Origin: Rhodosorus marinus CCMP1338
Lineage: Eukaryota; Plantae; Rhodophyta
DNA length: 64,000 bases
NCBI GenBank assembly: GCA_029953675.1
Contig: JAMWBK010000003.1
Coordinates: 62,001-126,000 of the forward strand
Reading direction: 5' to 3'
The translations under genes and the position numbers were made by a program. Below, one piece after another: positions 2,358 to 33,715 of the stretch (the stretch's first letter is position 1; every line of letters begins with the position of its first letter). The notes beneath the pieces are model-generated. The model did not search any database and was not told the origin of the DNA. It was given only the letters and a program-made list of their open reading frames with translations.

Positions 2358-2402
2358 CTTTACTAGCATAGCCTGAAACGCTACGCAAACCGTGAAAAAG
2401 AA

Positions 2403-5400
2403 CTAAGAACTAGGTAGGGAAGCGTGCAAATCCAGGCGCCAATGGCGCGCCTCGGCAAGCATGCTGCTCGAATATCGCCACAGAGAGACACTTAAACGTC
2501 GCAAAAGTACCAAGTATTCAACAGGATCCTCAGTGAAACATTTCCGCAACCACTCTAAACCCGACTTCTCCACGTGAGCAAAGCTTTCCACAATGAAAGG
2601 CTGGAACCGGTGGGAGCGACCCTCAGCGCGAGGCAGACTGGCCATACTCTCAGCATACCGTCGTTCTTTCACTCGGCGAAGGGCCGAAGCAGCTGCTCCC
2701 CGGCGGCGAACGGCGGCCGTGAGATGGGCGCTTGCCATAGGGCATGTAATCGCGAGGTCAACATTAACTGAGCGTCTGGCGGCAGCATCGGAGACAAGGA
2801 GATCTGCGATACAGCGCGGCGGTGCCCTATCCGAGAACGATCTGGGTAGTTCCGATTCCACCTCAACCGTATGCCCTACCCGAGTCAAACATTCGCTGAG
2901 GATGTGCTTGAAGCGAGTGTGACGCCTCGTACGAAGACCTCTCAACAGCCCGCATGAACCTAAGAAATGGTAACCACAAGCATCGATCCGACTCTCACAT
3001 CCCTGACAGAAGGACGGCCGATTAGAGTGCCACGGGGCTTGTGGCAAACCCAGGTAAATCCGTGGGGCGGTGCGAAACTGGAACGCATCCAGACGGTGAC
3101 CCAGTGAACCCAGTGATGACGGCAGGGTCGTTAACCACAAATGTGATAGATGGCCTCCCATGCCGCGAAGGCGAGCGGCGGTGGTAGGCGGTGTGAGGGG
3201 AGAGTTGAGCAAGACTGCGTGAGCGGCCCTGTGTTGGCCCCAGGTGAGGCTATGTTGAATCACATCAGTGCGCGAGCTCCAAAATCGGCTCAGACCCGGG
3301 TAATCGGCAACCGGTGAACCGGGGCTAGCTTCCCCCTCGTCGGCGAGTACTCTGTCGATGGGAGAGTCCTCGATCGCCTCAGTTCGTCCCCATAACAGCT
3401 CCTTCCAGGAGCGAAATATGGATCGGCTCTCGTCCGGCACGGCTTTGCACTTACTGAACGCCTGTTGCAGAGCATCATAGATACTCAAAAGCGGTGGCGG
3501 AAGGGTCACGGGCTCTTCGTTGGTCAGTGCTCTGGCCAAAAGACAGGCACTCCGCATCCGAAGAGTCACCAGGGTACGGAGCGCGGTAGCCCAGGAGGCG
3601 ACCGCCGCAGGCGAGCTGACGAGGCCCGATCTGCGACGCCAAACCCCCATAATCGCAATGGGAGAGCGAGCTTGGCACGAATGAGGTCCCTGTCCGGAGC
3701 AGCTTCAAGATCGAGGGGTTCATCCACTAGCGTGCCCCAGTGGTGCAGCGTCGTCTCGTCGGCCTTGGCGGCGATCCATGAACCCCAGGCGGGGGGTAGG
3801 CTACGCAACCAGTAGTTGAGTCGGGGACCGGCGCAAAAGCGGGAAAGCAAGCAGGCCGATTGCAGCATGCTGTCTGGAAGGCGTTCAATGGCGTCAGTGA
3901 GCCGCTTGTGCCGAGCCAAAACGCGTTCGCAAGAGGATTGGACGAAGGTCTTGCTCCCTAAACCGACGCCGTGGTGCTCGAACCCTTCACAGTCGCCAAT
4001 AATTCGTAGATTAGATGGCATAGAGGCCATCGAAGCTTCACTCGGAGCGAGAAAACGACACTTTTCTGGTTCCACCGTCAGACCTACTCCACATCCAATT
4101 GCTTCGATCTGGGTCAACCCCCGAGCTAGGTTTTCAGGGTCGCCCAGCAAAGTCACGTCGTCGTGATAGGCGTAGATACGAAGAGCCGGCACCTCATTCG
4201 CGATACGCCGGAGAACGAGCTGCAGGGCACAGGCATGAATTAGAGGCCCGCATGGATCGCCTTGTTGGACTCCAGTATGTGCTTCGAAAATAGTGCCCTC
4301 TCTGGTCCAGTAGGGGAGGCTCCCCCTTCCGTAAAGACCAGAGAGAAATGGCCACGCCTCCGGAAAAACCCGTCGGATCACCTCCAACGCATGCGTCCGC
4401 GAGATGCTGTTGAATGCGTTCCGAAAATCAACCACCAAAACTCCCCACTCCGGCCTACAGGCACGCTCCAGCTCGATCCCATGGGTGATCAATTCGCAAC
4501 CACCGGAAAATCCCACCCCCACTTGCAAGGGCGCCATAAAAGCTGTGACCCGCTGGCGAAGGCGCTGGCACGGCCACCTTCCGGCCAACTTCCGTAGGCT
4601 CTCGACCATACCGATCGGGCCGGAGACGCGTGGGGGCCGGCTGATGGTCAGGCTTCGTGAGCAGGCAAAGCTGTGCCCGGCGGAGGTGTTCCCAGGGAGC
4701 AGACGCACCCGACGTGCCCTGGAACAGTTTGTTCAGAATCTTGAGCAGCGCGCTCTGGCCATCTTTGCCCAAGGCCTGCAATAGTTCGGTGCGGAGCCCT
4801 GAGGGTCTAGGGCAGCGTCCACACAGCGAGGTACGAAGCAACTCCTCTAGGTCAGACTCGTTGAGTGTAAGGTCGATTTGAAACCGGGCCAACTCCGGAC
4901 GGTCCAAGAATGCCTCAAACTCGGGTAGCAAGTCCAAGTCGGACGAGGGGAACAGAGACGACACCGTCGGGGCAAGACTTTCTTCGTAGGGGAGGACAGG
5001 CGCCTGGCCCTCCAGGACCCGTGCCGCTCGACTCAAGTTGCCCACTGCTACCAATTTCTGTACTCGAGCCGTCAGGGGCAGGACGTTTCCAGCCCGAGTC
5101 GGACGAACGGATGGGTCCAACGACGCCAAGTAGCTTTGCTGCAACACCTCGAACTCCCTTTTCAGGAACATCGCCAGCCGATCTCGGACACGCCATCTGC
5201 GCTCCCGCGTGTGTGTTGGGGCCAGAAGCAGGCGCGACATGACCCCCAGAAATTCCCAGATGACGGTGTCCCGGGAGGTTACGTGCCAGGCTCGTGAAAA
5301 TGAAGTCCAGGATAGTCCCAGAGCGAGGTAAGACGACAGACGGAATTCTGCCACGCAGGGGAAGCAAGCCTCCTTCCAAAGACATCCAACGCCGAAGCCA

Positions 5401-5469
5401 ACTTCGTAAACGCGTACGCCAAATACCCCAGTCTCCGCGCTCCTTCACGACATAGGACTGCAAATCCAT
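2403..5469 (-). pseudogene. ORF2 RT-RLE of copy B, frameshifted
   Basis: Split over ORF-track frames 4915..5469, 4455..5354, 3566..4708 and 2403..3650. Contains LRPIG, VDFRNAFNS, GVQQGDPCGP and AYHDD. Confidence 0.9.
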
Positions 5470-5500
5470 CGGCTGCGATCTCGCAGCCGTGCCCGGGGAG

Positions 5501-6875
5501 CTAATCGTGCTTCTCCCCCTTAGACCCGGGGGGAGTCGGTTCTCGCACGTTTTCCGCCTAACCTCACCAAAGTGGTAAGGCGCCCACTCCGCGAGGCTCG
5601 CGGGATAGCTCCCGCGGGCTTCAGCAAAGTAGTAGGGGTGTCCTCCACCGACATGCCCTCACTCTGCTCCCCTTCCTCACCACTCTCACTGGAAGTGGTG
5701 TTGGAAGCAGAGCCCTCTAATACCCCTAACCTCTGTAACTCCCGCCTGTGACTCGACGTCAACACAAGGCACCTCTCCCGGTCGAAAAGGGTAGAGACGG
5801 CGGCACGCAGGTGGCGTGGCCCCGACGCGAAGCGCTCCAAACGGATGAGCTCAATGCGGTGAAGGCGTAGCCAATGGATGGCTGCGGCTTTCACGCTGGC
5901 TTCGCGCTGAGAGAGTCTTGCCATTTCTCCGGGAGACAGGAAGGTGCCCGAGAAACGGTCAAAATCAAAGTGCAGAACGACCTGGGGATGAGACCGCAAC
6001 CAGCGGGCACTCTCAGGCCATTGCTCGGTAGGCTTGGCCAGTAGGGCCTGTAGGTACGTGGCCGCTGTTGTAGTTACCACGAAAAGGACATCCCGGCCCT
6101 CGTAGTTTGCAAAGATGAAGTCGTTGCGGCTACACCCCAAAGACTATGCAAATGTATTCCGAAAATCGCGCATGGACGGGACCTGGCCCCGTGTAGTCTG
6201 GGGCCGGACGTTGCGCACCCAGAGGAATTGCAAAGTAGGCGCTTCAGGTCCGCCCTGCTGCTCGCGAGAGGGCAAAAATCTTAGCATAGCCGCCGTCCTT
6301 GCGCCTGTGGTACCCTTCCGCAAAGCTGAGACGTAAGACGGGCCCCCCTTGGGACCACCTCGTGCCCCCGCCTTGGCCTGGAGCTGTCGCCCACCTGAGG
6401 GCTGGCCCAGGACGGGAAATTCCGCTCCTGCTGAGGGAACATTCGAAGGAGTAGAGATAGCCACACCCCTCTCCAAAGAGGCGCCAGCAGAGGGACCACG
6501 AACAGCGGGCTCGGCAGCCCGCGCCTGTTCTGAGGCAGTCGCAGAATGACTGACCCCTTGATTTTGACTGCCTAAGGGCCGCGTAGGCAACGTGGCCACC
6601 GTGTTCGATTTTAGAGCATGCGCCAGGAGGCTGGATTCCAGCAAACCAAGCCGTTGAGTCAGCTGCGGCAGGACGCGCTTGTCCCCCGCGGCGGTGATTA
6701 GGCTGATTACGGCTGACATCAGAGCTCGTACTTCCGTACCAGTTGCGCCCTGCAGCTCCACCTGCGTAGAGAACTGGCCCGAACTTAGACACACCCGGTG
6801 CCCGACCCCCAAGGATACCTCGTTGCCTGGGAGCTCCGCTCCCGAGGGAGCAGGGCGCGGGGAAACCCCTACCAT
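5501..6875 (-). pseudogene. ORF1 of copy B with an in-frame TAG at 6144-6146
   Basis: Homologous to ORF1 at 11776..13185. TFA*SLG here versus TFAESLG in copy D. One extra G near 5530 alters the C-terminus. Confidence 0.8.
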
Positions 6876-7137
6876 CACCAAAGAATGGAGTGACGATACT
6901 GTTACCACCAATTCCCCCTCCGAAAACACGCACCAGCCAACTCCACAGGAGAAAATTCCCCGTCACGACCCGACAGCCAGAACGCGAATGACCCGACTAC
7001 CAACCACGAAACCCGATAAAACGGGGGAAAAGGCAGCAGAGAGAAGCGCCTCCCACCGAAGAAACCACTTGCTACGCAAAACCACCGAAACCTAGAACCA
7101 GACACCCTCCAACAACTACACAAGCTTTCCTTGGCTT

Positions 7138-7840
7138 TACTGGGTCACCGTCTGGATGATTTCCAGTTTCGCTCCGCTGCACGGATTTTACCTGGATTTC
7201 CCACAAGCTCCGTGGCACTCTAATTGACCGTCTTTCTGTCAGGAGTGTGAGAGTCGGATCGATGCTTGTGGTTACCGTTTCTTAGGTTCATGTGGACTGT
7301 TGATAGGTCTTCGTACGAGACGTTACAGCTTCAAGTACATCCTCAGCGAAAGTCTGACTCGGGTGGGGCATACGGTTGAGGCGGAATCGGAACTACCAAG
7401 ATCGGTCTCGGATAAGGCACCGCCCCGCTGTATCGCAGGTCTCCTCGTCTCCGATGCTGCCGCCAGACGCTCAGCATATGTTGACCTCGCGATTACATGC
7501 CCTGTGGGAAGCGCTCATCTTATGGCTGCCGCCCGCCGCCGGGGAGCAGCTGCTTTGGCCATTCGCCGAGTGAAAGAACGACTGAGAGTATGGCCAGTCT
7601 GCCTCGCGCTGATGTCGCTCCCACCGGTGCCAGCCTTCCATTGTGGAAAGCTTTGGTCACGTGGAGAAGTCAGATTTGGAGTGGTTGCGGAAACGTTTCA
7701 CTGAGCATGCTGGTGAATACTTTGGCGATATTCCAGCGACATGCTTTCCGAGGCGCGCCATCGGCGCCTGGGGTTGCATGCTTCCCTCCCTAGTTATTAG
7801 TTCATCTTCACGCCTTGCGCAGCGCTTCAGGCTATGCTAG
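7138..7840 (+). mobile_element. Family 1 5'-truncated copy C, opposite orientation, frameshifted
   Basis: CCHC and RLE region, then a 1A-type 3'UTR ending GCTATGCTAGTAAAGTCCAG. Confidence 0.85.
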
Positions 7841-8576
7841 TAAAGTCCAGTTGAATACTTGGAACTTCCCTACCTAGTTCGTAGCGCTTTAGTCTATGCT
7901 AATGAGGATCTGAAAGATCAAACCGGGAATTGCGCGGAGCAACAGAATGAGATTCGCCGTACTTTAATGGCTAGAAAACCGATGTAGCAGGAGAGAACTT
8001 CAAAAGTCTCCAGGATTTTTGATAGATGAGGCTGGACAAGGTTGATCCACTTACTAGTGGATAGAGGGTACGCACGCAATTCCATAGCGCAATTCCACTG
8101 GAGCAGGCTAAGGATGAAATCTGCTCCATCGTTAATCATCTGAGGGTCCATCTGACCGAGCAGATCCGTCAATGAAGATCTGGCCGAGTAACTAAAGGAT
8201 TCTCGAGACGATCAGTCTTGCACTTCGTAGAACCATACTCTGATAGAGCGGACTGGAGAGAGACTGGTAACTAGACGAAATATAGGGTCCTTCAGCGACA
8301 TCCTTCAAACCAGACAAAAAAACTACCTTTGCTTAGCTATACGTCCCGGATATGCCCGGCCAAAGTCCATAGCTGGGCGATCCGGCTCTATTGATTAAGA
8401 CGAACGGTGTTTTCGCTTCACGCCCGTCGATGAGGTACTCGTACCAATCGCTTGAACATCTTTCCAGTGTCTTTGGATTGTTGACCCTGTGTCCACTCTG
8501 CTCTGGCCCTAACTTTGGCAGTATGCCAAGTTCTTTCGGCACTGCTCGAGTGCCACATGGCACTAATCCCTTTCAT

Positions 8577-8635
8577 CTGGACTTTACTGGACTTTACTAC
8601 GCTACGCAACTAGCATAGCCTGAAGACTTTACTAG
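8577..8635. repeat. Tail repeats (CTGGACTTTA x2) plus stacked tiny 3'-end fragments
   Basis: CTGGACTTTA CTGGACTTTA CTAC GCTACGCAAC TAGCATAGCCTGAAG ACTTTACTAG. Confidence 0.85.
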
Positions 8636-8671
8636 CATAGCCTGAAGCGCTACGCAAGGCGTGAAGATGAA

Positions 8672-11600
8672 CTAATAACTAGGGAGGGAAGCATGCAACC
8701 CCAGGCGCCGATGGCGCGCCTCGGAAAGCATGTCGCTGGAATATCGCCAAAGGGAGACACTTAAACGCCTCAAGAGCGCCAAATATTCAGAAGGATGCTC
8801 AGCAAAACATTTCCGCAACCACTCTAAACCCGACTTATCGACGTGACCAAAGCTTTCCACAATGAATGGCTGGAACCGGTGAGAGCGACCCTCAGCGCAA
8901 GGCAGACTGGCCATGCTCTCAGCATACCGTCGTTCCTTAACTCTTCGAAGGGCTGAAGCCGCGGCCCCCCGGCGGCGGGCGGCTGCGGTGAGGTGGGCGC
9001 TGGCCACGGGGCAGGTAATCGCAAGGTCCACAGATGTTGAGCGTCTGGCAGCAGCGTCGGAGACGAGGAGATCGGCTATACAACGGGACGGTGCAGAGTC
9101 CGAGATTGATCTGGGCAGTTCCGACTCAACCTCAACCGTATGCCCTATCCGAGTCAAATATTCGCTGAGGATGTACTTGAGGCGAGTGTGACGCCTCGTA
9201 CGGAGACCTCGCAACAGTCCGCAGGAACCCAGGAAGTGGTAGCCACAAGCGTCAATCCGGCTCTCACATCCCTGACAGAAAGACGGCCGATTAGAGTGCC
9301 ACGCAGCCTGTGGCAAACCGAGATAGATCCGTGCGGCAGAACGGAACTGGAAAGCATCGAGACGATGACTCAATGACGACGGTAGAGTGGTTAACCACAA
9401 GTGCGAGAGGTGGCCTCCCATGCCGCGGAGACGAGCGGCAGTGGTAGGCGGCGTGAGAGGAGAATTGAGCATGACTGTGTGAGCGGCACTGTGTTGGCCC
9501 CAGGTGAGGCTATGTTGAATCACATCAGCGCGGGAGCTCCACAATCGGCTCAAACCCGGGTAGTCTGCAACAGGTGACCCGGGGCTAGCCTCTCCGTCAT
9601 CGGCAAGAACTCGGTCGAGGGGACAATCCTCAATCGCTTCAGCTCGTCCCCATAACAGCTCCCTCCAGGAACGAAAGCGGGACCGATTTGCGTCCGGCAC
9701 GGCGTTGCACCTCCTGAACGCGTGTTGAAGACCATCATAAATTGTCAAAAGCGGGGGCGGCAGGGTCACTGGATCCTCGTTGGTCAAAGCTCGAGCCAAG
9801 AGGCAGGCACTTCGCATCTGGAAGGTCACCAACGTTCGCAGCGCGGTAGCCCAGGAGGCAACCGCCGCTGGCGAGCATACCAGCCCACGGTCTGCGACGC
9901 CGAATCCCCCTAATCGCAACGGTAGAGCGATCTGTGCACGAATAAAGTCCCTGTCGGGAGCAGCTTCAAGATCGAGGGGCTCATCCAAGAGCGTTCCCCA
10001 GTGTTGCAGGGTCATTTCGTCGGCTTTAGCCGCGATCCACGAGCCCCAAGCTGGAGGCAGGCTGCGCAACCAGTAGTTGAGTCTGGGACCGGCACAAAAG
10101 CGGGAAAGCAAGCAGGCCGATTGCAGCATGCTGTCGGGTAGGTGCTCAATGGCGTCGGTGAGTTGCTTGTGCCGTGCCAAAACTCGCTCGCAGGATGCTT
10201 GGACAAAGTTGTCAGTCCCCAATCCGACGCCGTGGTGTTCGAACCCTTCACGTTCGCTGATTAGTCGCAGAGTGGGTGGCAGAGAGTTCAGCGACACGTC
10301 CCTCGCGGGGAGAAAGCGACATTTTTCTGTTTCCACAGTCAAACCGACGCGACGTGCAATCGCTTCGATCGCGGTCAGTCCCCTAGCCAGGGTGTCAGGG
10401 GTGCCCAGCAATGTTACGTCATCGTGGTACGCGCAGATTCGAAGATCCGAGACCTCAGTCGAAAGACGTAAAAGTACGAGCTGTAGGGCACAGGCATGAA
10501 GAAGAGGTCCGCAAGGGTCGCCTTGTTGGACGCCAGTATGTGCTTGAAAAACAGTGCCCTCCGTTGTCAAGTAGGGGAGGCTCTCCCCTCCGTAAATACC
10601 CGATAGAAGCGGCCACGCCTCCGGAAACACACGTCGGAGCACCTCTAGCGCATGCGTCCGCGACACGCTGTTGAATGCGTTCCGGAAATCAACCACCAAG
10701 ACTCCCCACTCCGGCCTACTGGCGCGTTCTAGCTCGATCCCATGGGTGATCAGTTCGCAACCCCCCAGAAAATCCCACCCCTACTTGCAAGGGCGCCATA
10801 AAAGCTGTGACGCGCTGGCGAAGGCGCTGGCATAGCCACCTCCCGGCTAACTTCCGTAGGCTCTCCACCATCCCGATCGGCCGGAGACGCGGGTGGGCCG
10901 GCTGCTGGTCAGGTTTCGTGAGCAAGCAAAGCTGTGCCTGCCGGAGATGTTCCCATGGCGCGGACGCACCCGATACGCCCTGGAACAACTTGTTAAGGAT
11001 CCTCAGAAGCGCGCTCTTGCCAGGCTGGCTCAGGGCCTGCAATAGCTCTGTTCTTAGTCCGGAGGGTCCGGGACAGCATCCCCGACGCGAGGTACGAAGC
11101 AAATCCTCCAGGTCAGACTCACTGAGCGTCAGATCGATGCGAAACCTGGCCAACTCCGGACGGTCCAAGAATACCTCGAATTCAGGGGACAAATCCACGT
11201 CGGACTCAGGGAACAAAGACGACACCGTCTGGGCGAGACTATCATCGTAGGGGAGGACAGGCGCCTGGCCCTCCAAAACCCGCGCCGCTCGACTTAAATC
11301 GCCCACTGCTACCAATTTCTGTACTCGAGCTGGCACGGGCGACACTGTGCCATGCCGGGTCCGACGGGCGGATGGTGCTGACGACGCCAAATAGCTGCGC
11401 TGTAGGACTTCAAAGTCTCCCTTCAAGAACAGGGCCAGTCGGTCTCGTACTCGCCATCTGCGCTCCGATGTGTGAATGGGGGCCAGAATCAGGCGCGGCA
11501 TGACCCCCAGAAAAACCCAAATGACTGTGTCCCGAATGTTGCGAGCCCGGCTCGTGAAGATGAAATCGAGAATGGTTCCAGCTACTAGAAGGTCTCCACG

Positions 11601-11744
11601 AGGAAGGACGACTGGGGGAATGCCCCCACGGAGGGGAAGCGAGCCTCCTTCCAAAGAAATCCACCGCCGGAGCCAACTCCGAAAACGCGTACGCCAAATG
11701 CCCCAGTCTCCGCCCTCCTTCAGGACATAAGACTGTAGATCCAT
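8672..11744 (-). CDS. ORF2: reverse transcriptase + CCHC + restriction-like endonuclease (~1023 aa if one G in the G6 run at 10761-10766 is removed)
   Basis: ATG at 11744. GCCPGPSGLR, LRPIGMVE, VDFRNAFNSV, GVQQGDPCGP, AYHDD, LGGFG, CCHC, RH, D-D-K, PFIVESFG. Span is 3073 nt = 1024 codons + 1. Confidence 0.88.
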
Positions 11745-11775
11745 AGGCTGCGACCTCGCAGCCGTGCCTGGAGCG

Positions 11776-13185
11776 CTAATCGTGCTTCTCCCCCTTAGAC
11801 CCGGGGGAGTCGGTCCTCGCTCTCTTACCTCCTATCCGCACCAAAGTCGTGAGCCGCCCACTCCGCGAGGCTCGCGGAACGGATCCCGCGGGCTTCAGCA
11901 AAGTAGCCTGGGCGTCCTCCACCGCCATGCCCTCAGTCTGCTCCCCTGCCTCACCACTCTCGCTGGAAGTAGTGCTGGAAGCAGAGCCCTCCAAAATCCC
12001 CACCCGCTGCAGCTCTGTCTTGTAGCGCGAAGTCAGCACAAGTCGCCTCTCCAGATCGAAGAAACTGGAAACCGCCATGCGCAGGTGACGAGGGCCCGAC
12101 CGGAACCGCTCCAACAAGATCCTCTCAAGGCGCTGAATCCGTAGCCAATGGATCGCTGCCGCCTTCACGCTGCTCTCATGCTCAGAGAGCCCTGCCGTTT
12201 CTCCCGGAGACAGGAAATTGCCCGAGAAACGGTCAAAATCCAAGTGCAAAACCACCTGCGGGTTGCCGCGCAGCCACCGGGCGCTCTCAGGCCACTGCTC
12301 GGTAGGCTTCGCCAGCAAGGCCTCCAGGTACTTGGCGGCGGTTGCGGAGACCAAAAACAGCACATCGCGACCCTCATAGTTTGCGAAGAAGAAATCACCC
12401 CGGCTGCACCCCAACGATTCCGCAAAAGTGTCCCGGAAGTCTCGCATAGACGGAACCTGTCCTCGTGTAGTCTGGGGCCGGACATTTCGCACCCACAGAA
12501 ATAGGAGAGTGGTCTCCACAGGTCCATCCTGAGGCTCGCGAGATGGTATGAAACTGAGCATAGCCGCCGTACGTGTGGCAGTGGTGCCCTTCCGCAAGAC
12601 TGATGCGTACGAAGCGCCCCCCTTGCGGCCACCACGTGCCCCCGAAGTAGCCGGGAGTTGGTGACCACCTGAGGGCTGGTCCAAGAGAGGGAAGTCCACA
12701 GCTGCAGTCTCCTCCACACCGGTTGCCGCACAGTCACCACCACCATTGCCTCGAGTCCCCGAGCGCTGAAGCGCGTTTTGGCCCGGCCTGCCGCTCCCCA
12801 ACGTCGTACTGTCCCGCGCAGAAGCAACAGCCCTCGCCTGTCCCGGGACAGGTTCATGTTGATTGACCGGATGTTGACTGCCTTCAGCCAACGCTGCCAC
12901 TCTGGGGCAATTCAAATTCTCGTCCGAATTTAAATTTGACCTGGCCAGCAATCCCGATTCCAGCCCACCTAGCTTCTGGGTGAGCTGAGGGAGCACTCCA
13001 CGATCACTCGCAGCCGTGATCAGGCTGGTGACAGCGGAGATAAGTGCACGCGCCTGGGTGCCAGAAGCGCCTTCCAAGTCAACCTCGGAAGAAAAGGTGC
13101 CGCAGCTGAGGCGAACACGGAGTCCCCCACCTGGCAGTGCCTCCTTGGGAGGAGGCTCCGTCGAGCGCGGAGATATCCCTACCAT
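11776..13185 (-). CDS. ORF1 (~469 aa) with conserved N-terminal domain and RRM-like core
   Basis: Open frame. ATG at 13185 (MVGISP) matches the MVGVSP starts of copy B and family 2. The upstream TTG extension in the ORF track is probably 5'UTR. Confidence 0.8.
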   Translation of the reverse strand: MVGISPRSTEPPPKEALPGGGLRVRLSCGTFSSEVDLEGASGTQARALISAVTSLITAASDRGVLPQLTQKLGGLESGLLARSNLNSDENLNCPRVAALAEGSQHPVNQHEPVPGQARAVASARDSTTLGSGRPGQNALQRSGTRGNGGGDCAATGVEETAAVDFPLLDQPSGGHQLPATSGARGGRKGGASYASVLRKGTTATRTAAMLSFIPSREPQDGPVETTLLFLWVRNVRPQTTRGQVPSMRDFRDTFAESLGCSRGDFFFANYEGRDVLFLVSATAAKYLEALLAKPTEQWPESARWLRGNPQVVLHLDFDRFSGNFLSPGETAGLSEHESSVKAAAIHWLRIQRLERILLERFRSGPRHLRMAVSSFFDLERRLVLTSRYKTELQRVGILEGSASSTTSSESGEAGEQTEGMAVEDAQATLLKPAGSVPRASRSGRLTTLVRIGGKRARTDSPGSKGEKHD

Positions 13186-13704
13186 CCTGAGGGAATCCGC
13201 AAAGGAAACGTTGCACCACCAATATGAAACCGCACCGAGAGAATAATCGACCAAACCCAACCCAAATAGGAAAGGCCCCGCAACACACCCACCCAGAAGA
13301 CAGAAGTAGTTGCAAATGCAAACGACGCCCCGCGGAAAATCGAGGGGAAGGCGTACCAGAGGAAGCGCTTCCCGTAAACGAACACGCTCGCGACCGAAAA
13401 AGAAACAAAACCCCAATCCTCGACAACAACTCAGCTAGACTGTTAAGCTAACATGGCAAACTACTTCTCAGTAACCCCCCCCATCCCTTTCATCGGCGAG
13501 TTGGTTTTGCAAGCAGGAAACGGACGAGGAGGTGTGGAAGTTTAGCTTTTGTTTTTTTCAATCGGAACCTCAACATGCGGTAGTTCATCTCTTCTCAAAT
13601 GTGCTTCTTCTCCTCGCGACGATTCTCTGGGTGAAGTTGCAGCTTTTCGTAAGGCTCAATCGGACGAGATGCTGGCGCGTCGGAGAGGCGGTGCTGACGT
13701 CGAG

Positions 13705-15700: not shown

Positions 15701-16226
15701 AAGTTTGCTACCACTGTGGTGTGACCAACATTTAGAAACCTAAACTGCTTCTAGATTGGACAATATTCTTAATATTATTAGAAAGAATCTGCATCTCCGC
15801 CTGTCAATCTGTTGGAATTTTCGAGGATTCCCAACCTTGACCAAAGTCCCGTCAGCCAAACTTCGATAGTTTCCTTATTGTTTCCCTGACCATTGGGGTC
15901 GGTGTCTCGCACTTCGGTAACCTACTATACTGTGGTGATAGTCGATGGCTTGTACCGTTCGGAATTGGATGCAAAGATCAGTTTTTGGTTTCGTGAGGGT
16001 GTATGGTGCTGGCTTTTGGTGGTTTTGAGTCGCAATTGTGTTCTTCGGTGGGAGGCGCTTCTTTCTGCAGCCTTTCCCCCGCATCTTCTAGTGGTGTGGT
16101 GCGTGCTGGGGGTTGCTAGCGCCCCTTGGAGGTCGTGGTGGTTTTTCTTTGGTTGCAAACGTTGGGAACAAGTTCTCTTTTTGGGGGTTTCGTTGGGGAA
16201 TCGGTTTTTCACACCTTCCAATCGTT

Positions 16227-17513
16227 ATGGTTGGGGTTTCCCCACCCATTCCGGCGGACGGAGCCGTTCTCTCAGCGCGCGTGGAGCTCAGCGTGGGCGG
16301 GTTTAGTACCGCGGCCACCCTCACGGACTGCGCTGACGAGTTAGCCCATGGGATCTGCTCGAAACTGACGAGTCTTCTTGTGACTGCTTCCCAGGAACAC
16401 CGCCTGCCCCTGCTGATCGCCTATTTGGAGCGCTTCTCCGCCTCCGCGCCTGCCCCATACCCCCGGTGCCCGTCCCCGCGGATCCGCACGGTACAGCGGG
16501 GCCTGCCTCCACCCGACCCGAGCGCTCCGCTCCGGTCATTCCTGATTCCGACTGGCCTACCCCTATTCAAGGACAGACGCCTCCTGGGCCCGCGTCGGGC
16601 CCGAATCCTGCTCCCTCCAGTGCCCCACGTGCGACCTATTCGCAGGTCCTGCGCAGGGGCTCTTCTGAACAACGCACGACGGCAATGGTGCGTATGATGC
16701 CACAACACATCCCTATTGACTCTTCTCGCCAACTATCTCCGTTCCACTTTGTTTGGATGACGAACGTGCGTCCCCAGACCCCCTCTCGTGGTCGGGGCCG
16801 CGCGCCCGTCCACTACCGCGATTTTCGCGACACCATGGCTTCCTCCCTTGGGGTCGCCCCGTCTGAATTCCTATATGTGGACTTCACGGGCCCTCATGCC
16901 TGTTTTCTTGTTACTGACTCGGCTTACCAGTTCCTTCAATCGCTTGTAACCACCCCCGCGCCCCAGCGCTCTGCTCTGGCCAACATGATACTGACTCGTC
17001 CTCATGTCTCTTTGTTTGTCGAGTTCGATCGTTTTGACGCCGGCTGGGGCCTTGCAAAACCTGGATGCCTCGCAGGCTTCGGTTGTCGCGCTACACACTC
17101 ATGCGGCGCGGCTCTCGCGCGTACAGGCGAGCCTCTTCGCGCGTTTTCCTCCTCGCGGGGTCCTCGGCACCGCGCTAGAGGCCTTCCTCTCCACTGAGGC
17201 CACCCTGCTGGAAGCCCACCCTGCGTTTGACCTTCTGCCGCCGACTCCTGAGCACCCTTCCTCCCCTCGCCCTGTCTCCGAGGCTCGTGACACCGACATG
17301 CCAGAAGCACCATCGGCCTCTCCGAATCCGCTGGCTCTGGACACCCTCAGTCAAGACTCCGCTGCTGAAAACCCTGTGTCTACTTTCTTCAGGTCTTTTA
17401 GTTCCTTCGTGCGCCCCCCACGTAAGCGTCGTGCGGCTCCTGAGCCTCCCTCCGAGGCACCTCCTCCGGATATTCGATCTGCCTTCCCGACTGAGGGGAG
17501 GCCCGATGTCTGA
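16227..17513 (+). pseudogene. Family 2 ORF1 (RRM-like core), frameshifted
   Basis: Spans frames 16113..16697, 16466..17197 and 17004..17513. Contains FHFVWMTNVRPQT...YRDFRDTMASSLG...EFLYVDF...HACFLV. Confidence 0.8.
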
Positions 17514-20500
17514 GTCTTCCTCCTCCGCGTGCGTGTCGTCCCGGCTACCCCTGTTTACCAGTGACCGCTCAGCCTGGCATGAGCGTGTTATCTCGTGGTT
17601 TTCGCACCTTGTCGCCTCCTACCCGGACGGTTCTCTTCCCCTTTGTCGTCAGAGCACGGCCGTACGGCTCCCTCGTCGACTTCATAAGCCCCTAGGATTG
17701 GTGTTGGATTTCTCTGGCAGCAGGTCGCCGCGAACCCTCACTGCTCTCTTCGCTGGGAACTCTTGTTCTTTTTTCCCCGCCTCGTGCTCACCTCCTCTAC
17801 CGTCCCCCTCAACCCACATCCTCGCCGGGTCCACCCTCGCCGAAACTGCAAATGTTCCTTTCCGGCGACTTTGAGGACCTCGAACGTCTTTATTTCGCTT
17901 CTCTCTCTTCCTTTTCTCCTAGTGCTCCCTCAGCTTTTAGGTCTTCTCGACAGAATCGGGCGCGTCACGCGGTGGTAAGCGGTGATCTGCGGCGGGCAGC
18001 CGGGATCCTCCAGCAGCGGCAACCTGTGGTTCCATACTCCGATGATCTTTCTTCACCGCTCCGTTTGCTCTTTCCCTCGGAAGGCTCCCCTTGGGACTCC
18101 TCGTTTGAATCAGTGTTGGAAGAGTACCGCGCCGCGCCACATCCCAGTGCGCGGTTAGTGGTCAATCTGGAGGCGGTGCGTCAGTTGGTTCATGATGCTC
18201 CGAAGGGCCGTTCCCCAGGGCCCTCGGGGCTGCGGGTGGAATATCTCCGTTTCTTAAGTGATGAAGGTTTGAAGGCGTTGGCGTGGGTGGTCGAAGCGCT
18301 TGTGAATGGTGATCCTCTGTGTGAGTGTGCGTGGTTCTTGGTCGGGCGTTCGCAGTTGTGTCTGCTTTCGAAGCCCGGCCACACGGCCTCGAGCCCTGCT
18401 ATTCGCCCTATTGGCCTGGTTGAGGTGGTCCGCAAATTGGCGGCGCGATGGTTAGTGAAAATCCTGGTTCCCGAATCCCGCCGTTTCTTTGGGCACGTGC
18501 AGTTAGGCGTGGGCTATCGTGGTGGCTGTGAGTTGTTGTCTGTTTTACTCCGTTCGGAAATGGCGTACTCCCCAGATTCTGGGCTCCTCTCTGTAGATTT
18601 TACCAATGCGTTCAACCGCGTCTCTCGTCCGGCTCTCATGCACGTGGTGCGCGAAGTCTTCCCTGTAGGCTTTCCCTTTGTTAGTAGACTTTATTCTCCG
18701 CTTGGTCGTGGGGCTACCTATGACACCCTTGGCGCTTCCTCACACACGTTTGCGGCGCGCACAGGGGTACAACAGGGTGATCCCTTGTCCCCTTTCCTAC
18801 ATGCCTGTGGACTACAACTCGTCTTGCTTTGTCTTCGCTCCGAATTCCCGCAGGTTCGTACGGTTGCATACCACGACGACGTGTGCCTCCTGTGCCCCCT
18901 GATACTCTAGCGCTCGCTTATGATCGTCTCCGCTCCTTGGCTTCGCGGGGGGACTTGGAAGTTAATCATCACGAATCGTTCTACTGGGGAGGTGTAGCTG
19001 CACAAGAGCAGCAGGTACCTGCGTCGTTCCAGGATATTTGGAGACCGGATGGTTTTGTCCACTTAGGCATCCCCTACGGGTCGCCGTCCTTCGTTGAAGG
19101 CGAGTTGCTGCAGCTCCTCGGTAAGCACAGACAGCTGGTTGCAGAGCTTCGACGGCTCCCTCCGGGCTTTCTCCAGTGCGCGTTGTTGCTGTTTCGGTAT
19201 TGTTGCAGTCAGCGGTTAACCTATTGGCTTCGCTCACTTCCAACTCATTGGGGCCGGTGGTTGGCCACTCGTGCGGATGCTGAAAGTTTCCGTGACCTGG
19301 GGTATTTTCTCGATGAAGAGCTGAGCGCTCTGCCGCGACCCACCTGTGATGTTGTGCGCGCCCAGGTAGGCCTCCCATTGCGATTGGGGGGACTGGGCCT
19401 CTGCAATCGTGTTGTGGTCCAACCTGCAGCCGCAGTAGGGGCCTGGGGAACCGCACTTCCCACTTTGAGCAGCTTGGGTATCTCGAAGTTCCGCAATTTG
19501 ATGGCGAGCCTCTCGCGGGGTGTCTTGCTTCCCAGCGTACCGGAAAGCGCCCAAGACTTGTTTCTGGAGCTCCAAACCGCCCTGAATTCCTGTACTAGTC
19601 TCCCCGAAACCGTTCAACCCCGTCTTCCTGACTGGCGAGCTGTATTTGACCGCTCTCGAGGCTCCGCCCCGCCGGGATTCGTCCTGCGCCTGAACCTGTT
19701 CTAGGGGAGATTGACCCAGTGGTTGCCGCAGAAGGAGAAGTTCCAGTTGATCCTCCTGATAATTCCCAGCGCGCTGGGAGCCGAGCTCAAGCACGCACGG
19801 ATGCGCTGCAAAACATCCTTTCTTGGGACTTGCACCGTGCTGCATATGGCCGAGTCCTCGCGCAGATGGTCTCATCTTCTCGCGCCCGCGCCCGCCTACA
19901 TAGTCTTGGAGGGGTTATTAGCTCTCAGTGGCTCATGACCGTACCAGCCTTTCCGCCACTCACACTGTCGGATTTCGAAGTGCGTACTTCACTGCGCTTA
20001 TACCTCGGCTTACATCAGCCCCCTTGGCCGTACGAGATGGGTTCGTCGTGCCCTCTCTGCTCTCAGACTGACGACAACGCAGATTTTGGCGCCCACCTGC
20101 TCGCTAGTTGCCCGGCGGTGAAAGGTGCTCGAACCCGCCGCCATACACGGATCTTGAACCTGTTATACCGGGAACTTCGGCCTATAGTCCGGCAAGCCGG
20201 TCTGGAAATCGAACGTGAGAAACCTTTACCCGTCGCGGACTTTCAAAATGATGAACGCCGTGTAGCCGACCTGGTGATCACCTGTGACGACAGCCGCCGT
20301 ACCACATACGTTGATCTTGCTGTTCCTAACCCTCAAGCTAGTCGTTATCTCCCGGCTGCGGGGGAGCGCCGTGGATCTGCCGCCGCCAGCATGAGACGCC
20401 GCAAAGAGATCAAATACGCGGGGGCTTTGTCTTCCCCTGGTGTTCGTGCTTCGGCACTAGCACATCGCTTGATACCCCTGATCATTGAGTGCTTTGGGTT

Positions 20501-20648
20501 CATGGACTCTGTTGGTTCTCGCTGGCTTCGGGAGTTGTTCCGCGAACGCCCTGACCGTCTTCAATCGTTGTTTACCCGCTTAAGTTTCCTGCTGTGGCGC
20601 ATGAATGCCGCTTTGATGTTGGAGGCGCGAGTACTTCGCCGCGCTTAG
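17506..20648 (+). pseudogene. Family 2 ORF2 RT-RLE, frameshifted
   Basis: ATG at 17506 overlaps the ORF1 stop. GRSPGPSGLR, IRPIG, VDFTNAFNRV, GVQQGDPLSP, AYHDD, CPLC...H...C, RH, VADLV, VDLAV, KEIKY, PLIIECFG. Confidence 0.9.
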
Positions 20649-21497: not shown

Positions 21498-21816
21498 CAG
21501 ATGCCCCAGTCTCCGCTTTCCTTCAGGACATAAGACTGGCTTTACTAGCATAGCCTGAAACGCTACGCAAACCGTGAAAAGGAACTAGGTAGGGAAGCGT
21601 GCAAACCCAGGCGCCGATGGCGCGCCTCGGCAAGCATGCTGCTCGAATATCGCCACAGAGAGACACTTAAAGGCCGCAAAAGTTCCAAGTATTCAACAGG
21701 ATGCTCAGTGAAACACTACTAGCATAGCCTGAAACGCTACGCAAACCGTGAAAGGAACTAAGAACTAGGTAGGGAAGCGTGCAAACCCAGGCGCCGATGG
21801 CGCGCCTCGGCAAGCA
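21498..21816 (-). mobile_element. Stack of family 1 fragments: two 1B 3' ends (21535-21714, 21718-21816) and a ~40 bp piece from the ORF2 start (21498-21537)
   Basis: Matches the 3'UTR at 2358-2540 and the segment 11700-11735. Confidence 0.85.
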
Positions 21817-22162
21817 TTGGGACTACTACAATAAGACCATCCTCATTGTACAAGTCCGTTAGAGAAGTCGGTCCGCTCTGCTCGGCGGGCGACCCTTAGT
21901 TTATCTTGAAGAAGATTTCCTTTTCGTACTGAACCTCTAAATGAACGTTCGTGATTAAGGAGGTGGTTTGAACAGCATTGATAGCCAGGTATGAACAGTG
22001 TTTCAAGCACGCGATGTTTTCTCACCCAAGGCGACCCAGCTAGCAGACCTACCTCAGGCCTATTTGCGGTTCCAGGAATTATTGCCGTTCTTTTCTTCAA
22101 CGACACTTTTTCTTCAAAGATAGGTCCTTTTTTTTTCTTAGCAGATCAAACCAAGAGTTCTC

Positions 22163-22558
22163 GAACCAGAATCAGAACAGTTCATGTTGTTCTACCGGAA
22201 TCAAATGGAAATGTACACGGAGCGGCTGTCGGATGAGATTTGAGGTCGACCAAATTTCAGAACCAGAATCAGAACAGTTCATGTTGTTCTACCGGAATCA
22301 AATGGAAATGTGTACACGGAGCGGCTGTCGGATGAGATTTGAGGTCGACCAAATTTCAGAACCAGAATCAGAACAGTTCATGTTGTTCTACCGGAATCAA
22401 ATGGAAATGTACACGGAGCGGCTGTCGGATGAGATTTGAGGTCGACCAAATTTCAGAACCAGAATCAGAACAGTTCATGTTGTTCTACCGGAATCAAATG
22501 GAAATGTACACGGAGCGGCTGTCGGATGAGATTTGAGGTCGACCAAATTTCAGAACCA
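22163..22558. repeat. Four tandem copies of a 97 bp unit (one copy 99 bp)
   Basis: GAACCAGAATC recurs at 22163, 22260, 22359 and 22456; a partial GAACCA follows at 22553. The units are near-identical. Confidence 0.95.
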
Positions 22559-27038: not shown

Positions 27039-27907
27039 TACGAACGAATGGTTTAATCGGAGGCTGAAAAAAAAAACCCCGAGGGGAAAAAAAGACTAAG
27101 CGCGGCGAAGTACTCGCGCCTCCAACATCAAAGCGGCATTCATGCGCCACAGCAGGAAACTTAAGCGGGTAAACAACGATTGAAGACGGTCAGGGCGTTC
27201 GCGGAACAACTCCCGAAGCCAGCGAGAACCAACAGAGTCCATGAACCCAAAGCACTCAATGATCAGGGGTACCAAGCGATGTGCTAGTGCCGAAGCACGA
27301 ACACCAGGGGAAGACAAAGCCCCCGCGTATTTGATCTCTTTGCGGCGTCTCATGCTGGCGGCGGCAGATCCACGGCGCTCCCCCGCAGCCGGGAGATAAC
27401 GACTAGCTTGAGGGTTAGGAACAGCAAGATCAACGTATGTGGTACGGCGGCTGTCGTCACAGGTGATCACCAGGTCGGCTACACGGCGTTCATCATTTTG
27501 AAAGTCCGCGACGGGTAAAGGTTTCTCACGTTCGATTTCCAGACCGGCTTGCCGGACTATAGGCCGAAGTTCCCGGTATAACAGGTTCAAGATCCGTGTA
27601 TGGCGGCGGGTTCGAGCACCTTTCACCGCCGGGCAACTAGCGAGCAGGTGGGCGCCAAAATCTGCGTTGTCGTCAGTCTGAGAGCAGAGAGGGCACGACG
27701 AACCCATCTCGTACGGCCAAGGGGGCTGATGTAAGCCGAGGTATAAGCGCAGTGAAGTACGCACTTCGAAATCCGACAGTGTGAGTGGCGGAAAGGCTGG
27801 TACGGTCATGAGCCACTGAGAGCTAATAACCCCTCCAAGACTACGTAGGCGGGCGCGAGCGCGGGAAGATGAGACCATCTGCGCGAGGAGTCGGCCATAT
27901 GCAGCAC
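27039..27907 (-). mobile_element. Family 2 5'-truncated copy
   Basis: Near-identical to 19840-20712, with the same 3' terminus. Confidence 0.92.
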
Positions 27908-28201: not shown

Positions 28202-29157
28202 TAGACTTGGCTATGGAAGCGACAACGCGGACTCACCGACGCTCTGTGGCTGGCGATCTTCCAGGGGACGAAACCGGCACCTCTCGCCTGACTCTCCAAG
28301 CAGCTACAGGAGTCCAACAGGGAGATCCACTGGGGCCGGTGCTACACGCACTATCCCTGGCGCCCTTTCTAAGAGCGTTGCGAGCCAAGTTCCCAACGAA
28401 ACGATTGTTGCTATCCACGACGATATCATGATATTCGGGCCGCTACAAGCCTTGAAGGCATCCCTGGCATGGGGAAAAACTGTGCTCCCCTCTCTTGGAG
28501 CACGTCTGCAACTCGGCAAGTGCACTGTGTACGGGCGAACACTAACTACCACGCGAGTGGTCAACCATGAGATTCCTGGAGTCCAAGTGACCAGAGACGG
28601 AGTCACCATCCACTCGATACCGATAGGCAGCCGAGAATATGTCGAACAGGAGTGCCGGGGGCTGCAAAATAAGCATGAGAAACTCTTTGAGGAAATTGCC
28701 AAGCTCCCACAACCGGACATATTCTCGGCTGCCTATCGGTATCGAGTGGATGGTGACTCCGTCTCTGGTCACTTGGACTCCAGGAATCTCATGGTTGACC
28801 ACTTGCATGGTAGTCAGTGTTCGCCCGTACACAGTGCACTTGCCGAGTTGCAGACGTGCTCCAAGAGAGGGGAGCACAGTTTTTCCCCATGCCAGGGATG
28901 CCTTCAAGGCTTGTAGCGGCCCGAATATCATGATATCGTCGTGGATAGCAACAATCGTTTCGTTGGGAACTTGGCTCGCAACGCTCTTAGAAAGGGCGCC
29001 AGGGATAGTGCGTGTAGCACCGGCCCCAGTGGATCTCCCTGTTGGACTCCTGTAGCTGCTTGGAGAGTCAGGCGAGAGGTGCCGGTTTCGTCCCCTGGAA
29101 GATCGCCAGCCACAGAGCGTCGGTGAGTCCGCGTTGTCGCTTCCATAGCCAAGTCTA
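28202..29157. repeat. 442 bp inverted repeat with a 72 nt loop (arms 28202-28643 and 28716-29157) made from family 3 RT sequence
   Basis: The arms are reverse complements with a few substitutions. The ORF track shows the same peptide on both strands. Confidence 0.9.
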
Positions 29158-31958: not shown

Positions 31959-33331
31959 TTAAACTTCAGTAAATTCCCCCCCTAACCCCAATGAGTATAC
32001 CGGAGTCCAGCTGAATACCGTAGTTGTTAAGGCCGCACCTTCAACGGGGTCTACCGTCTCCGCAGCTTGAACCAAGTCTACAGGCTCCGCACCCTGAACG
32101 AAGGCTGCCGGCTCCGCACCCGGAACGAAGGTTGCCGGGCCAGCACTTGGAACGACAGCTGCCGGCTCCGCACCCTGAACGACGGTTGCCGGGCCAGCAC
32201 TCGGAACGAATTTGTGACTGGCAACCTGAACACCCCCCTGAACTTTCTCCGCAAGATGAACTAGGGCTATCGGCTCCGCACCCTGAACGAAGGCTGCCGG
32301 CTCTGCACCCGGAACGAAGGTTGCCGGGCCAGCACTCGGAACGAATTTGTGACCGGCAACCTGAACGCCCCCCTGAACTTTCTCCGCAAGATGAACTAGG
32401 GCTATCGGCTCCGCACCCTGAACGAAGGCTGCCGGCTCCGCACCCGGAACGAAGGTTGCCGGGCCAGCACTCGGAACGACAGCTGCCGGCTCCGCACCCT
32501 GAATGATAGTTGCCGGCTCCGCACCCTGAACGACGGTTGCCGGCTCCGCACCCTGAACGAAGGCTGCCGGCTCTGCACCCTGAACGACGGTTGCCGGGCC
32601 AGCACTCGGAACGAATTTGTGACTGGCAACCTGAACGCCCGCCTGAACTTTCTCCGCACCCTGAACGAAGGCTGCCGGCTCTGCACCCTGAACGACGGTT
32701 GCCGGGCCAGCACTCGGAACGAATTTGTGACTGGCAACCTGAACGCCCGCCTGAACTTTCTCCGCAAGATGAACTTTCTCGATCAACGGAACCGCGGAAC
32801 GAAGGTTGCCGGGCCAGCACTCGGAACGAATTTGTGACCGGCAACCTGAACGCCCCCCTGAACTTTCTCCGCAAGATGAACTAGGGCTATCGGCTCCGCA
32901 CCCTGAACGAAGGCTGCCGGCTCCGCACCCGGAACGAAGGTTGCCGGGCCAGCACTCGGAACGACAGCTGCCGGCTCCGCACCCTGAATGATAGTTGCCG
33001 GCTCCGCACCCTGAACGACGGTTGCCGGCTCCGCACCCTGAACGAAGGCTGCCGGCTCTGCACCCTGAACGACGGTTGCCGGGCCAGCACTCGGAACGAA
33101 TTTGTGACTGGCAACCTGAACGCCCGCCTGAACTTTCTCCGCACCCTGAACGAAGGCTGCCGGCTCTGCACCCTGAACGACGGTTGCCGGGCCAGCACTC
33201 GGAACGAATTTGTGACTGGCAACCTGAACGCCCGCCTGAACTTTCTCCGCAAGATGAACTTTCTCGATCAACGGAACCGCCGTCGTGAACCCTAGCACGG
33301 CGACAAGAACTAATGCGCTCAACTTCATCAT
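31959..33331 (-). CDS. Secreted Ala/Val/Pro/Gly-rich repeat protein (~290 aa without the duplication), interrupted by a 485 bp tandem duplication
   Basis: Signal peptide MMKLSALVLVAVLGFTTA. Repeats VQGAEPAA, VPSAGPAT and VHLAEKVQAGVQVASHKF. GATCAACGGAACCGC occurs at 32781 and 33266. Confidence 0.75.
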
Positions 33332-33715
33332 GTTCAATCCGCTCCCTCTGCAGAACTACACAACTTCGGCCGACCTTCTACAAAATCGTTTACTCCCGTC
33401 GAAATTCAAATCTGAGCTCTTATCACAATCCCCGCTTCTGGCAATGCACGACTTGTCACATATCCCTCGGCCCACACATCCCAATCCTCAGCAGGCATCG
33501 CTTTACTTATAACCCCAGATCACATATCCTCGCAAGACCGTGGACGTTGGTAAGCCGGCATTCCGGTAAGATGGCGAGAGCACCAACGTTAGGCCTATGC
33601 CGTACCCAAGTGAGCTATTTACAATCAGAAAATTCCTTTACGCCGCGTGGAGGTTGCAGTCACTCAGGCCATTGCTATTGGCGTAACGCTACACTTCTAC
33701 ATCAAGGAAACACAG

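Follow-up and report, generated by a model that had tools for sequence, protein, structure and literature searches.

An apparently undescribed ORF1 with a predicted RRM-like core in two-ORF RLE-type retrotransposons of the red alga Rhodosorus marinus

The stretch of 64,000 nucleotides analysed here, hereafter the window, belongs to contig JAMWBK010000003.1 (positions 62,001 to 126,000) of the red alga Rhodosorus marinus CCMP1338. It carries four families of non-LTR (long terminal repeat) retrotransposons, F1 to F4, whose second open reading frame (ORF2) encodes a reverse transcriptase (RT) and a C-terminal restriction-like endonuclease (RLE). In all four of them, ORF2 is preceded by an ORF1, and these ORF1s have in common one core of about 90 amino acids. 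The sequence at 5520-6875 (minus strand) is the ORF1 copy of one such bicistronic RLE-type element, disabled by a single nonsense codon. ORF1 is a real, selected gene linked to the RT-RLE ORF2s. It is a genuine and apparently undescribed type of ORF1, borne by a small lineage of RLE retrotransposons that have two ORFs, and structure prediction supports for its core a ferredoxin-like fold with the topology of an RNA recognition motif (RRM).

Family F1 provides an intact ORF1 of 469 amino acids, counted from the methionine of MVGISP (F1b, 11776-13185, minus strand). Compared with it by tblastn within the window, the copy at 5520-6875 (F1a) is a full-length and colinear homologue (64% amino acid identity, E 5e-170). 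Its frame is broken once, in the first helix of the core, by a TAG at 6144-6146 that stands in place of the Glu of the F1b sequence FAESLG. The same searches relate the ORF1 of F1 to that of F2 (16631-17080, E 1.6e-24), the ORF1 of F3 to that of F4 (41234-41464, E 1e-15) and the ORF1 of F2 to that of F3 (E 1.7e-4). The common core that the first-pass annotation had proposed for the four families is thus present at these places, with a similarity (E 5e-170 to 1.7e-4) far beyond chance. By the Nei-Gojobori method, applied to F1a and F1b, the core has the lowest ratio of nonsynonymous to synonymous substitutions of all ORF1 parts (pN 0.075, pS 0.67, dN/dS 0.046), the values being 0.11 for the N-terminal module, 0.20 for the C-terminal helices, 0.29 for the tail, 0.39 for the linker and 0.12 for the RLE part of ORF2; synonymous sites are saturated between the two copies, so that these ratios are rough, and the contrast between the core and the rest is plain. 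On the strength of this ratio, the possibility that the ORF is fortuitous or non-coding was dismissed. Furthermore, a transcript of the core is known from the R. marinus transcriptome MMETSP0315 (fragment P0033).

In F1b, an N-terminal module (12937-13185; strands 2-6, 22-28 and 31-37, helices 42-58 and 65-83, all of them predicted) precedes the core (12232-12507), which is followed by basic C-terminal helices (11998-12171, pI 10.7) and by a disordered Ser/Glu-rich tail ending in KRAR. The F1a copy has the same N-terminal module (6615-6875, MVGVSP..., beta strands and two helices) and core (5958-6233), both on the minus strand. The ORF1 of F2 (16227-17513, plus strand) is spread over three reading frames with at least two frameshifts, its N-terminal module lying at 16227-16439, its core at 16742-17029 and its C-terminal helices and tail at 17055-17513. 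The open frame of F3 (30359-31816, minus strand, 485 amino acids) contains a core at 30974-31249 that is devoid of the NVRP motif of strand 1, and helices resembling those of the N-terminal module at 31451-31612. A fragment is left of the ORF1 of F4 (41180-41617, minus strand, core at 41231-41497). All the full-length ORF1s have a disordered tail rich in acidic residues, Ser and Pro, with a short basic motif, K(R/K)(A/S/V)R, which resembles a nuclear localisation signal and is a candidate for this function (F1b 11776-11830; F2 about 17440-17513; F3 30359-30560; also in P0035 and L007, two relatives presented below).

The motifs that had first drawn attention to these ORFs hold to various extents. 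The motif (L/V)WxxNVRP, announced for all four families, is complete in F1 (LWVRNVRP) and F2 (VWMTNVRP), whereas F4 has FTNLRP, without the Trp, and the window copy of F3 does not have the motif at all. The N-terminus MVG(V/I)SP and the adjacent module (RVRLSCGTFSxEVDL and two helices) are indeed common to F1 and F2; P0035 also has this module, which F3 shows more weakly. The DNA of the window F3 copy (30974-31369, minus strand) resembles that of an F3-like copy bearing LRNVRPP, located elsewhere in the genome (L006), only from RLDEVAP onwards, and the part of its ORF1 lying upstream is unrelated to that copy. Given that the strand-1 motif LRNVRPP is missing, the window F3 copy looks like a recombinant or a variant. 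A compensated frameshift as cause of this loss was rejected: the motif is found in no other frame and the DNA similarity ends at this point.

ORF1 is closely associated with its ORF2. In F1, a spacer of 31 nt separates the ORF1 stop from the start of ORF2, both in the window and at L006; in F3, the ORF2 start overlaps the ORF1 stop (ATGA). The F1b ORF2 (RT and CCHC/RLE, 8672-11744, minus strand) has one frameshift near 10700-10716 and that of F2 (RT and RLE, 17530-20648, plus strand) is also frameshifted. The F3 ORF2 (RT, 28542-30359, minus strand) is cut short by an inverted duplication of 442 nt, a foldback in the RT region whose arms (28202-28643 and 28716-29157) are 99% complementary and separated by a 72-nt spacer, and degraded ORF2 remnants follow the ORF1 fragment of F4 (about 38000-40560). 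ORF2 matches Pfam RVT_1 at E 1e-11, and the apurinic/apyrimidinic endonuclease (APE) domain (PF03372) is absent from every ORF2 of the window according to Pfam. Its nearest relatives of solved structure in the PDB are the R2 proteins 9nl3 and 9dou (E 1.7e-9, about 2e-9). In the C-terminus, C-x2-C-x7-H-x4-C, RRHTR, ADLLV and VDLAI align with the CCHC/RH/PDL...D region of R2, an alignment that is weak when taken alone (E 0.4-0.6). By the presence of the RT and of the C-terminal CCHC and PD-(D/E)xK-type motifs, the window elements are assigned to the RLE-type non-LTR retrotransposons.

Relatives of this ORF1 are few. A word-indexed protein search with the full-length F1b ORF1 found nothing, probably because words from its low-complexity linker swamped the query. 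When a profile of the core was run by HMMER against 1.84 billion representative proteins, 11 matches were obtained, nine of them below 1e-10, and most of them are short fragments very near the window families. P0025 is an ORF1-like hypothetical protein of R. marinus (KAJ8903743.1) whose gene lies at L006, a locus on contig JAMWBK010000007.1 of the same assembly (GCA_029953675.1). P0035 (503 amino acids) is a divergent full-length ORF1 that joins an N-terminal module of the F1/F2 type to a core of the F3/F4 type; on its contig (L009), the ORF2 start codon overlaps the ORF1 stop, being situated immediately upstream of it, and the N-terminus of this ORF2 is 36% identical to the F3 ORF2. Outside the genome, ORF2 has its closest relative in P0001 (34% identity, full coverage), which is located on L001/L007 downstream of an ORF1 that contains the common core (VVVDNIRP...VDFHNRYTFFLV), the two ORFs overlapping by ATGA. 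This metagenomic ORF1 was detected at E 1e-8 by a hidden Markov model built without that lineage. The ORF1-ORF2 arrangement is therefore found in six lineages (F1-F4, L001/L007 and L009). No ORF1 of this kind is present in the more distant RLE elements of L002-L005 (animal-like contigs) and L008 (Pyropia), and scans of metagenomes with back-translated core motifs gave no further loci. Taken together, these searches indicate that the ORF1 family is real, that it goes closely with a single group of RT-RLE ORF2s and that public data contain very few members of it. The literature searched contains no description of Rhodosorus retrotransposons or of an RRM-like ORF1 in RLE elements, and the suggestion that this ORF1 type is undescribed apparently stands, as no Pfam or other database family, named homologue or publication was found for it.

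The state of several window copies, namely the nonsense codon of F1a, the frameshifts of F2, the F4 fragment and the F3 copy that has lost its strand-1 motif, would fit an ORF1 that is a captured fragment of a host gene or a decaying remnant devoid of any role in transposition. Such an origin is very improbable in view of the constraint on the core, of the recurrence of the ORF1-ORF2 arrangement across lineages and of the intact ORF1s present in young copies. In the same way, the profile matches whose context was examined (P0025 and P0035) adjoin an RT-RLE ORF2, the others being short fragments similar to the window families.

The core was modelled by AlphaFold2 as a construct of 240 amino acids, from an alignment of 19 rows that is shallow and mostly drawn from one species. 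The mean pLDDT (predicted local distance difference test) of this construct is 77.6 and reaches 85-93 over the core, in which strand 1 (42-48; LFLWVRN in F1b), helix 1 (62-72; RDFRDTFAESL), strand 2 (80-86; FFFANYE), strand 3 (89-95; DVLFLVS), helix 2 (96-107; TAAKYLEALL), a short helix and strand 4 (127-130; VVLH) follow one another; three long helices come after the core domain (150-209). The model of the full-length ORF1 (mean pLDDT 60) gives the same order and the same secondary-structure boundaries for the core, together with an N-terminal module of three strands and two helices (pLDDT 53-69), a disordered linker of 100 residues and a disordered tail. The two runs are not independent, since their alignments share most rows. 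It is thus conceivable that the predicted core fold is an artefact of the shallow alignment and that the real structure is different: only 19 sequences, most of them from one genome, underlie models that have most of these rows in common, neither model has a significant structural neighbour, and confidence over the whole protein is low. However, the pLDDT of the core is equally high in both runs, with identical boundaries, and four alternating hydrophobic strands and amphipathic helices are kept across lineages that are less than 20% identical, which makes an artefact rather improbable.

For both models, the matches found by Foldseek in the PDB are led by RRM-type RNA-binding domains. These include the C-terminal domain of DbpA/YxiN (E 0.035, probability 0.99), the ACF RRM 2cpd (E 0.056-0.09, probability 0.87-0.94), RBM30 RRM1 (2dnq, probability 0.89-0.97, rmsd 3.2 Å over 66 columns) and RBM30 RRM2 (2dgt) and, at lower ranks, the Pof8 xRRM and the Mex67 RRM (probability about 0.3-0.4). 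The probabilities of the RRM-type matches range from 0.28 to 0.99, those of the leaders from 0.80 to 0.99. Furthermore, strand 1 of F1 (LWVRNV) and of F2 (VWMTNV) fits the RNP2 consensus [ILV]-[FY]-[ILV]-x-N-[LV], and the pattern hydrophobic-x-N-[VLIA] is kept in strand 1 of F4, P0025, P0033, P0035 and L001.

It should be emphasized that a whole set of results weighs against membership of the RRM family. No Foldseek match in the PDB reaches E<=1e-3 for either model, the leading E-values being 0.035-0.2, and the target-normalised TM score of the RRM-type matches is only 0.41-0.54. NIPSNAP, IS200 TnpA and designed ferredoxins are interleaved with the RRMs in both lists, and the BFVD library of viral folds gave no match. 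At the sequence level, Pfam RRM_1 matches none of 19 members at E<=10, one xRRM match being found at E 0.24; a sequence-profile search of the PDB gave only bZIP-like noise on the C-terminal helices. Alignment by hhalign to 12 canonical RRMs is not significant (P 0.04, against 0.44 for a reversed control; probability 1.3%), and this is a weak negative only, as the RRM sequences used are liable to contain errors. The aromatic residue of RNP2 is missing outside F1 and F2. RNP1 ([RK]-G-[FY]-[GA]-[FY]-[ILV]-x-[FY]) is absent from strand 3, which reads RDVLFLVS, PHACFLVT, SHACLLCH or SHVFAVLH, sequences that contain no Gly and never more than one aromatic residue. The low confidence of the modelled N-terminal module and the shallowness of the 19-row alignments have to be added to this list. 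The RRM-like fold anticipated by the first-pass annotation is consequently retained in part: the AlphaFold2 core has the predicted beta-alpha-beta-beta-alpha-beta topology and RRMs head the Foldseek matches, whereas a profile match, RNP1 and a structural match at E<=1e-3 are lacking. The RNP2-like motif is complete in F1 and F2, loses its aromatic residue elsewhere and is absent as a whole from the window F3. In other words, the models support a ferredoxin-like fold of RRM topology for the core, and its descent from RRMs is possible.

Concerning function, the ORF1 proteins of LINEs (long interspersed nuclear elements) that have been characterised all bind or chaperone RNA (PMC4120745), and by analogy with these proteins such a role is the most likely one for the ORF1 described here. 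The core, the basic C-terminal helices and the terminal KRxR are the candidate functional parts. ORF1 would comprise an N-terminal module possibly involved in self-association, a long disordered linker, the conserved core, a basic helical hairpin and the KRxR tail. Translated from the mRNA of the element, directly upstream of ORF2, it would bind the element RNA through its core and its basic helices, form a ribonucleoprotein particle with the RT-RLE protein and accompany it into the nucleus for target-primed reverse transcription. RNA binding, oligomerisation and nuclear import are here proposed by analogy with other LINE ORF1s. In every lineage, the helices of the C-terminus have a basic pI (10.2-10.9). 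Two features speak against such a function: the overall pI of ORF1 varies widely (9.4 for F1b, 7.4 for P0035 and 5.6, thus acidic, for F3), and the cores themselves are no more than mildly basic, some being acidic. This variation in overall charge weakens a simple model of nucleic-acid coating.

The core could also be a ferredoxin-like domain that does not bind RNA, acting for example in target recognition or as a dimerisation module. No zinc-finger or Myb match was found in the N-terminal region (about 200 amino acids) of the ORF2s of F1, F3 and L009. Moreover, full-length F1 copies adjoin 5'-truncated F1 copies head-to-tail, in the window and at L006 (junctions and 3' ends at 960-1060, 2340-2400, 7820-7860 and 8560-8640 of the window, and at 17940-17960 of L006). 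The F1 3' end, ...GCTATGCTAGTAAAG, has no poly(A); in some cases, short (C)CCAGTAAAG repeats come after it. Stacking of this kind, with a constant 3' end, points to insertions targeted to existing copies or to sites beside them, which would need DNA recognition. As ORF2 is devoid of the N-terminal DNA-binding motifs of the R2 type, the stacking of F1 makes target recognition by ORF1 a serious rival to RNA binding. The modest charge of the cores is also in line with it, as are the Foldseek E-values of the DNA-binding IS200 TnpA and of dimeric alpha/beta-barrel (NIPSNAP) folds, which are similar to those of RRMs. However, the highest probabilities in both searches belong to RRM-type RNA-binding domains, no HUH or other catalytic motif is found, a conserved His before strand 3 is absent from F1 and L001, and all characterised LINE ORF1 proteins bind or chaperone RNA (PMC4120745). 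A role other than RNA binding is therefore judged unlikely, less so than an artefactual fold. Binding of the element RNA by the core and the basic helices, as in other LINE ORF1s, remains the best overall explanation and is held to be somewhat more probable than all its alternatives taken together.

The retroelement copies are nested over the left two thirds of the window, in DNA of about 57-60% GC, against about 48% for the surrounding DNA. F1 includes a near full-length element of 4782 bp (F1b, 8626-13407), an older copy (F1a, 2358-6966) and 5'-truncated copies (1-1023 and 1028-2357), all on the minus strand, and F1 fragments are also found elsewhere. F2 is represented by a frameshifted copy (16113-20648, plus strand) and two younger 3' copies (27042-27907, minus strand, and 33888-35932, plus strand) that are 98.8-99.3% identical, F3 by an element at 28542-31816 (minus strand) and F4 by a degraded one (about 38000-41617, minus strand). 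F1b and the L006 copy share 98.4% identity across 4.8 kb. To judge from this value and from that of the F2 copies, this red-algal RLE lineage has been active recently. The contig that bears L006 measures 2.2 Mb, and the locus is 5-26 kb away from its end.

Other features of the window are a tandem pair of solo F1 3' ends (21534-21817), each limited to the terminal 100-180 bp and without any element body, and a 97-bp tandem repeat (22163-22558; 4.1 copies, 98% identity) in unique DNA between elements. An ORF on the minus strand (31959-33337), adjoined by an F2 fragment, begins with a signal-peptide-like sequence (MNMMKLSALVLVAVLGFTTA) and continues with a 27-nt repeat in about 43 copies, whose translation consists of units of the (GAEPAxxVQ) type, a 485-bp duplication that is 100% identical being included. 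It has no Pfam match and looks like a gene for a secreted repetitive protein. The right third of the window contains ordinary host genes, encoding a glucose/sorbosone dehydrogenase-like protein (PF07995; 49498-50871, plus strand), a PLP enzyme of Cys/Met metabolism (PF01053; 53441-54848, minus strand) in two ORFs split by an intron or a frameshift, and a protein with a thioredoxin-like [2Fe-2S] ferredoxin domain (PF01257; 57688-58413, plus strand).

The textbook view opposes early RLE LINEs with a single ORF to later APE LINEs with two ORFs and an RRM-type ORF1. This split is blurred by a red-algal RLE lineage that has been active recently and whose RRM-like ORF1 is conserved and under selection. 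It is tentatively proposed, as a possibility that is more doubtful than RNA binding itself, that an early-branching RLE-type LINE lineage already has a true, highly diverged RRM-type ORF1 that packages RNA. If so, the association of an ORF1 chaperone with an ORF2 enzyme would predate the switch from RLE to APE, or would have been invented twice on the same fold. These elements are a tractable system to study when and how often the ORF1 “RNA chaperone” arose, and whether ORF1 can replace the missing N-terminal nucleic-acid-binding domains of ORF2. Hypothetical proteins of R. marinus such as KAJ8903743.1 can now be annotated as retrotransposon ORF1. The value of these results lies in the evolution of transposable elements and in genome annotation, and broader biology is unchanged by them.

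Among known elements, SLACS and CZAR, from the CRE clade of trypanosomatids, are two-ORF RLE elements and, like those of R. marinus, have an ORF1 upstream of the RT-RLE ORF. No trypanosomatid protein is found among the 11 core-profile matches, the sources of the library including NCBI and UniRef, and none of the homologues returned by the ORF2 profile search bears the name of a transposable element or a clade assignment. SLACS and CZAR insert in spliced-leader genes (PMC5814959), whereas Rfam detects no RNA gene in the window, spliced-leader RNA included, and the R. marinus copies adjoin copies of their own element. Neither this result nor the lack of an N-terminal zinc finger in ORF2 speaks for the CRE-like placement put forward by the first-pass annotation, which is conjectural. 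With the RLE LINEs in general (R2, R4, NeSL, HERO and CRE), the R. marinus elements share a non-LTR RT whose nearest relatives of solved structure are R2 proteins, a C-terminal CCHC and PD...D nuclease region, and insertions that are stacked, as if site-preferring. However, RLE LINEs are described as single-ORF elements with N-terminal zinc-finger/Myb DNA-binding motifs (PMC5678591), whereas those of R. marinus have two ORFs and none of these motifs at the N-terminus of ORF2.

According to the summary given in PMC4120745, the ORF1 types I-V of Khazina and Weichenrieder, with their RRMs, are defined in APE-type clades; the background assumed by the first-pass annotation (RRM ORF1s in APE-type elements, RLE elements mostly with a single ORF) agrees with this source and with PMC5678591. 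The type I ORF1s (I, Jockey, R1, Tad1 and plant L1) offer a precedent for an RRM-like domain of non-canonical type that simple sequence searches miss (PMC4120745). They combine one or several RRMs with CCHC knuckles, unlike the R. marinus ORF1, which has a single core, no CCHC knuckle and belongs to an RLE-type element. L1 ORF1p (type II: coiled coil, RRM and C-terminal domain, or CTD; Transposase_22) gave no Pfam match and is not among the PDB sequence or fold matches. It also differs from the R. marinus ORF1, in which the basic helices come after the core without any CTD, the charge is not uniformly basic and the partner ORF2 has an RLE instead of an APE. The two proteins nevertheless resemble each other in organisation. 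Both are encoded by the upstream ORF of a bicistronic LINE, with a short spacer before ORF2, both associate a helical part that is a candidate for self-association with a single beta-alpha-beta-beta-alpha-beta domain, next to which lies a basic region, and, by analogy, both would coat the RNA of their own element.

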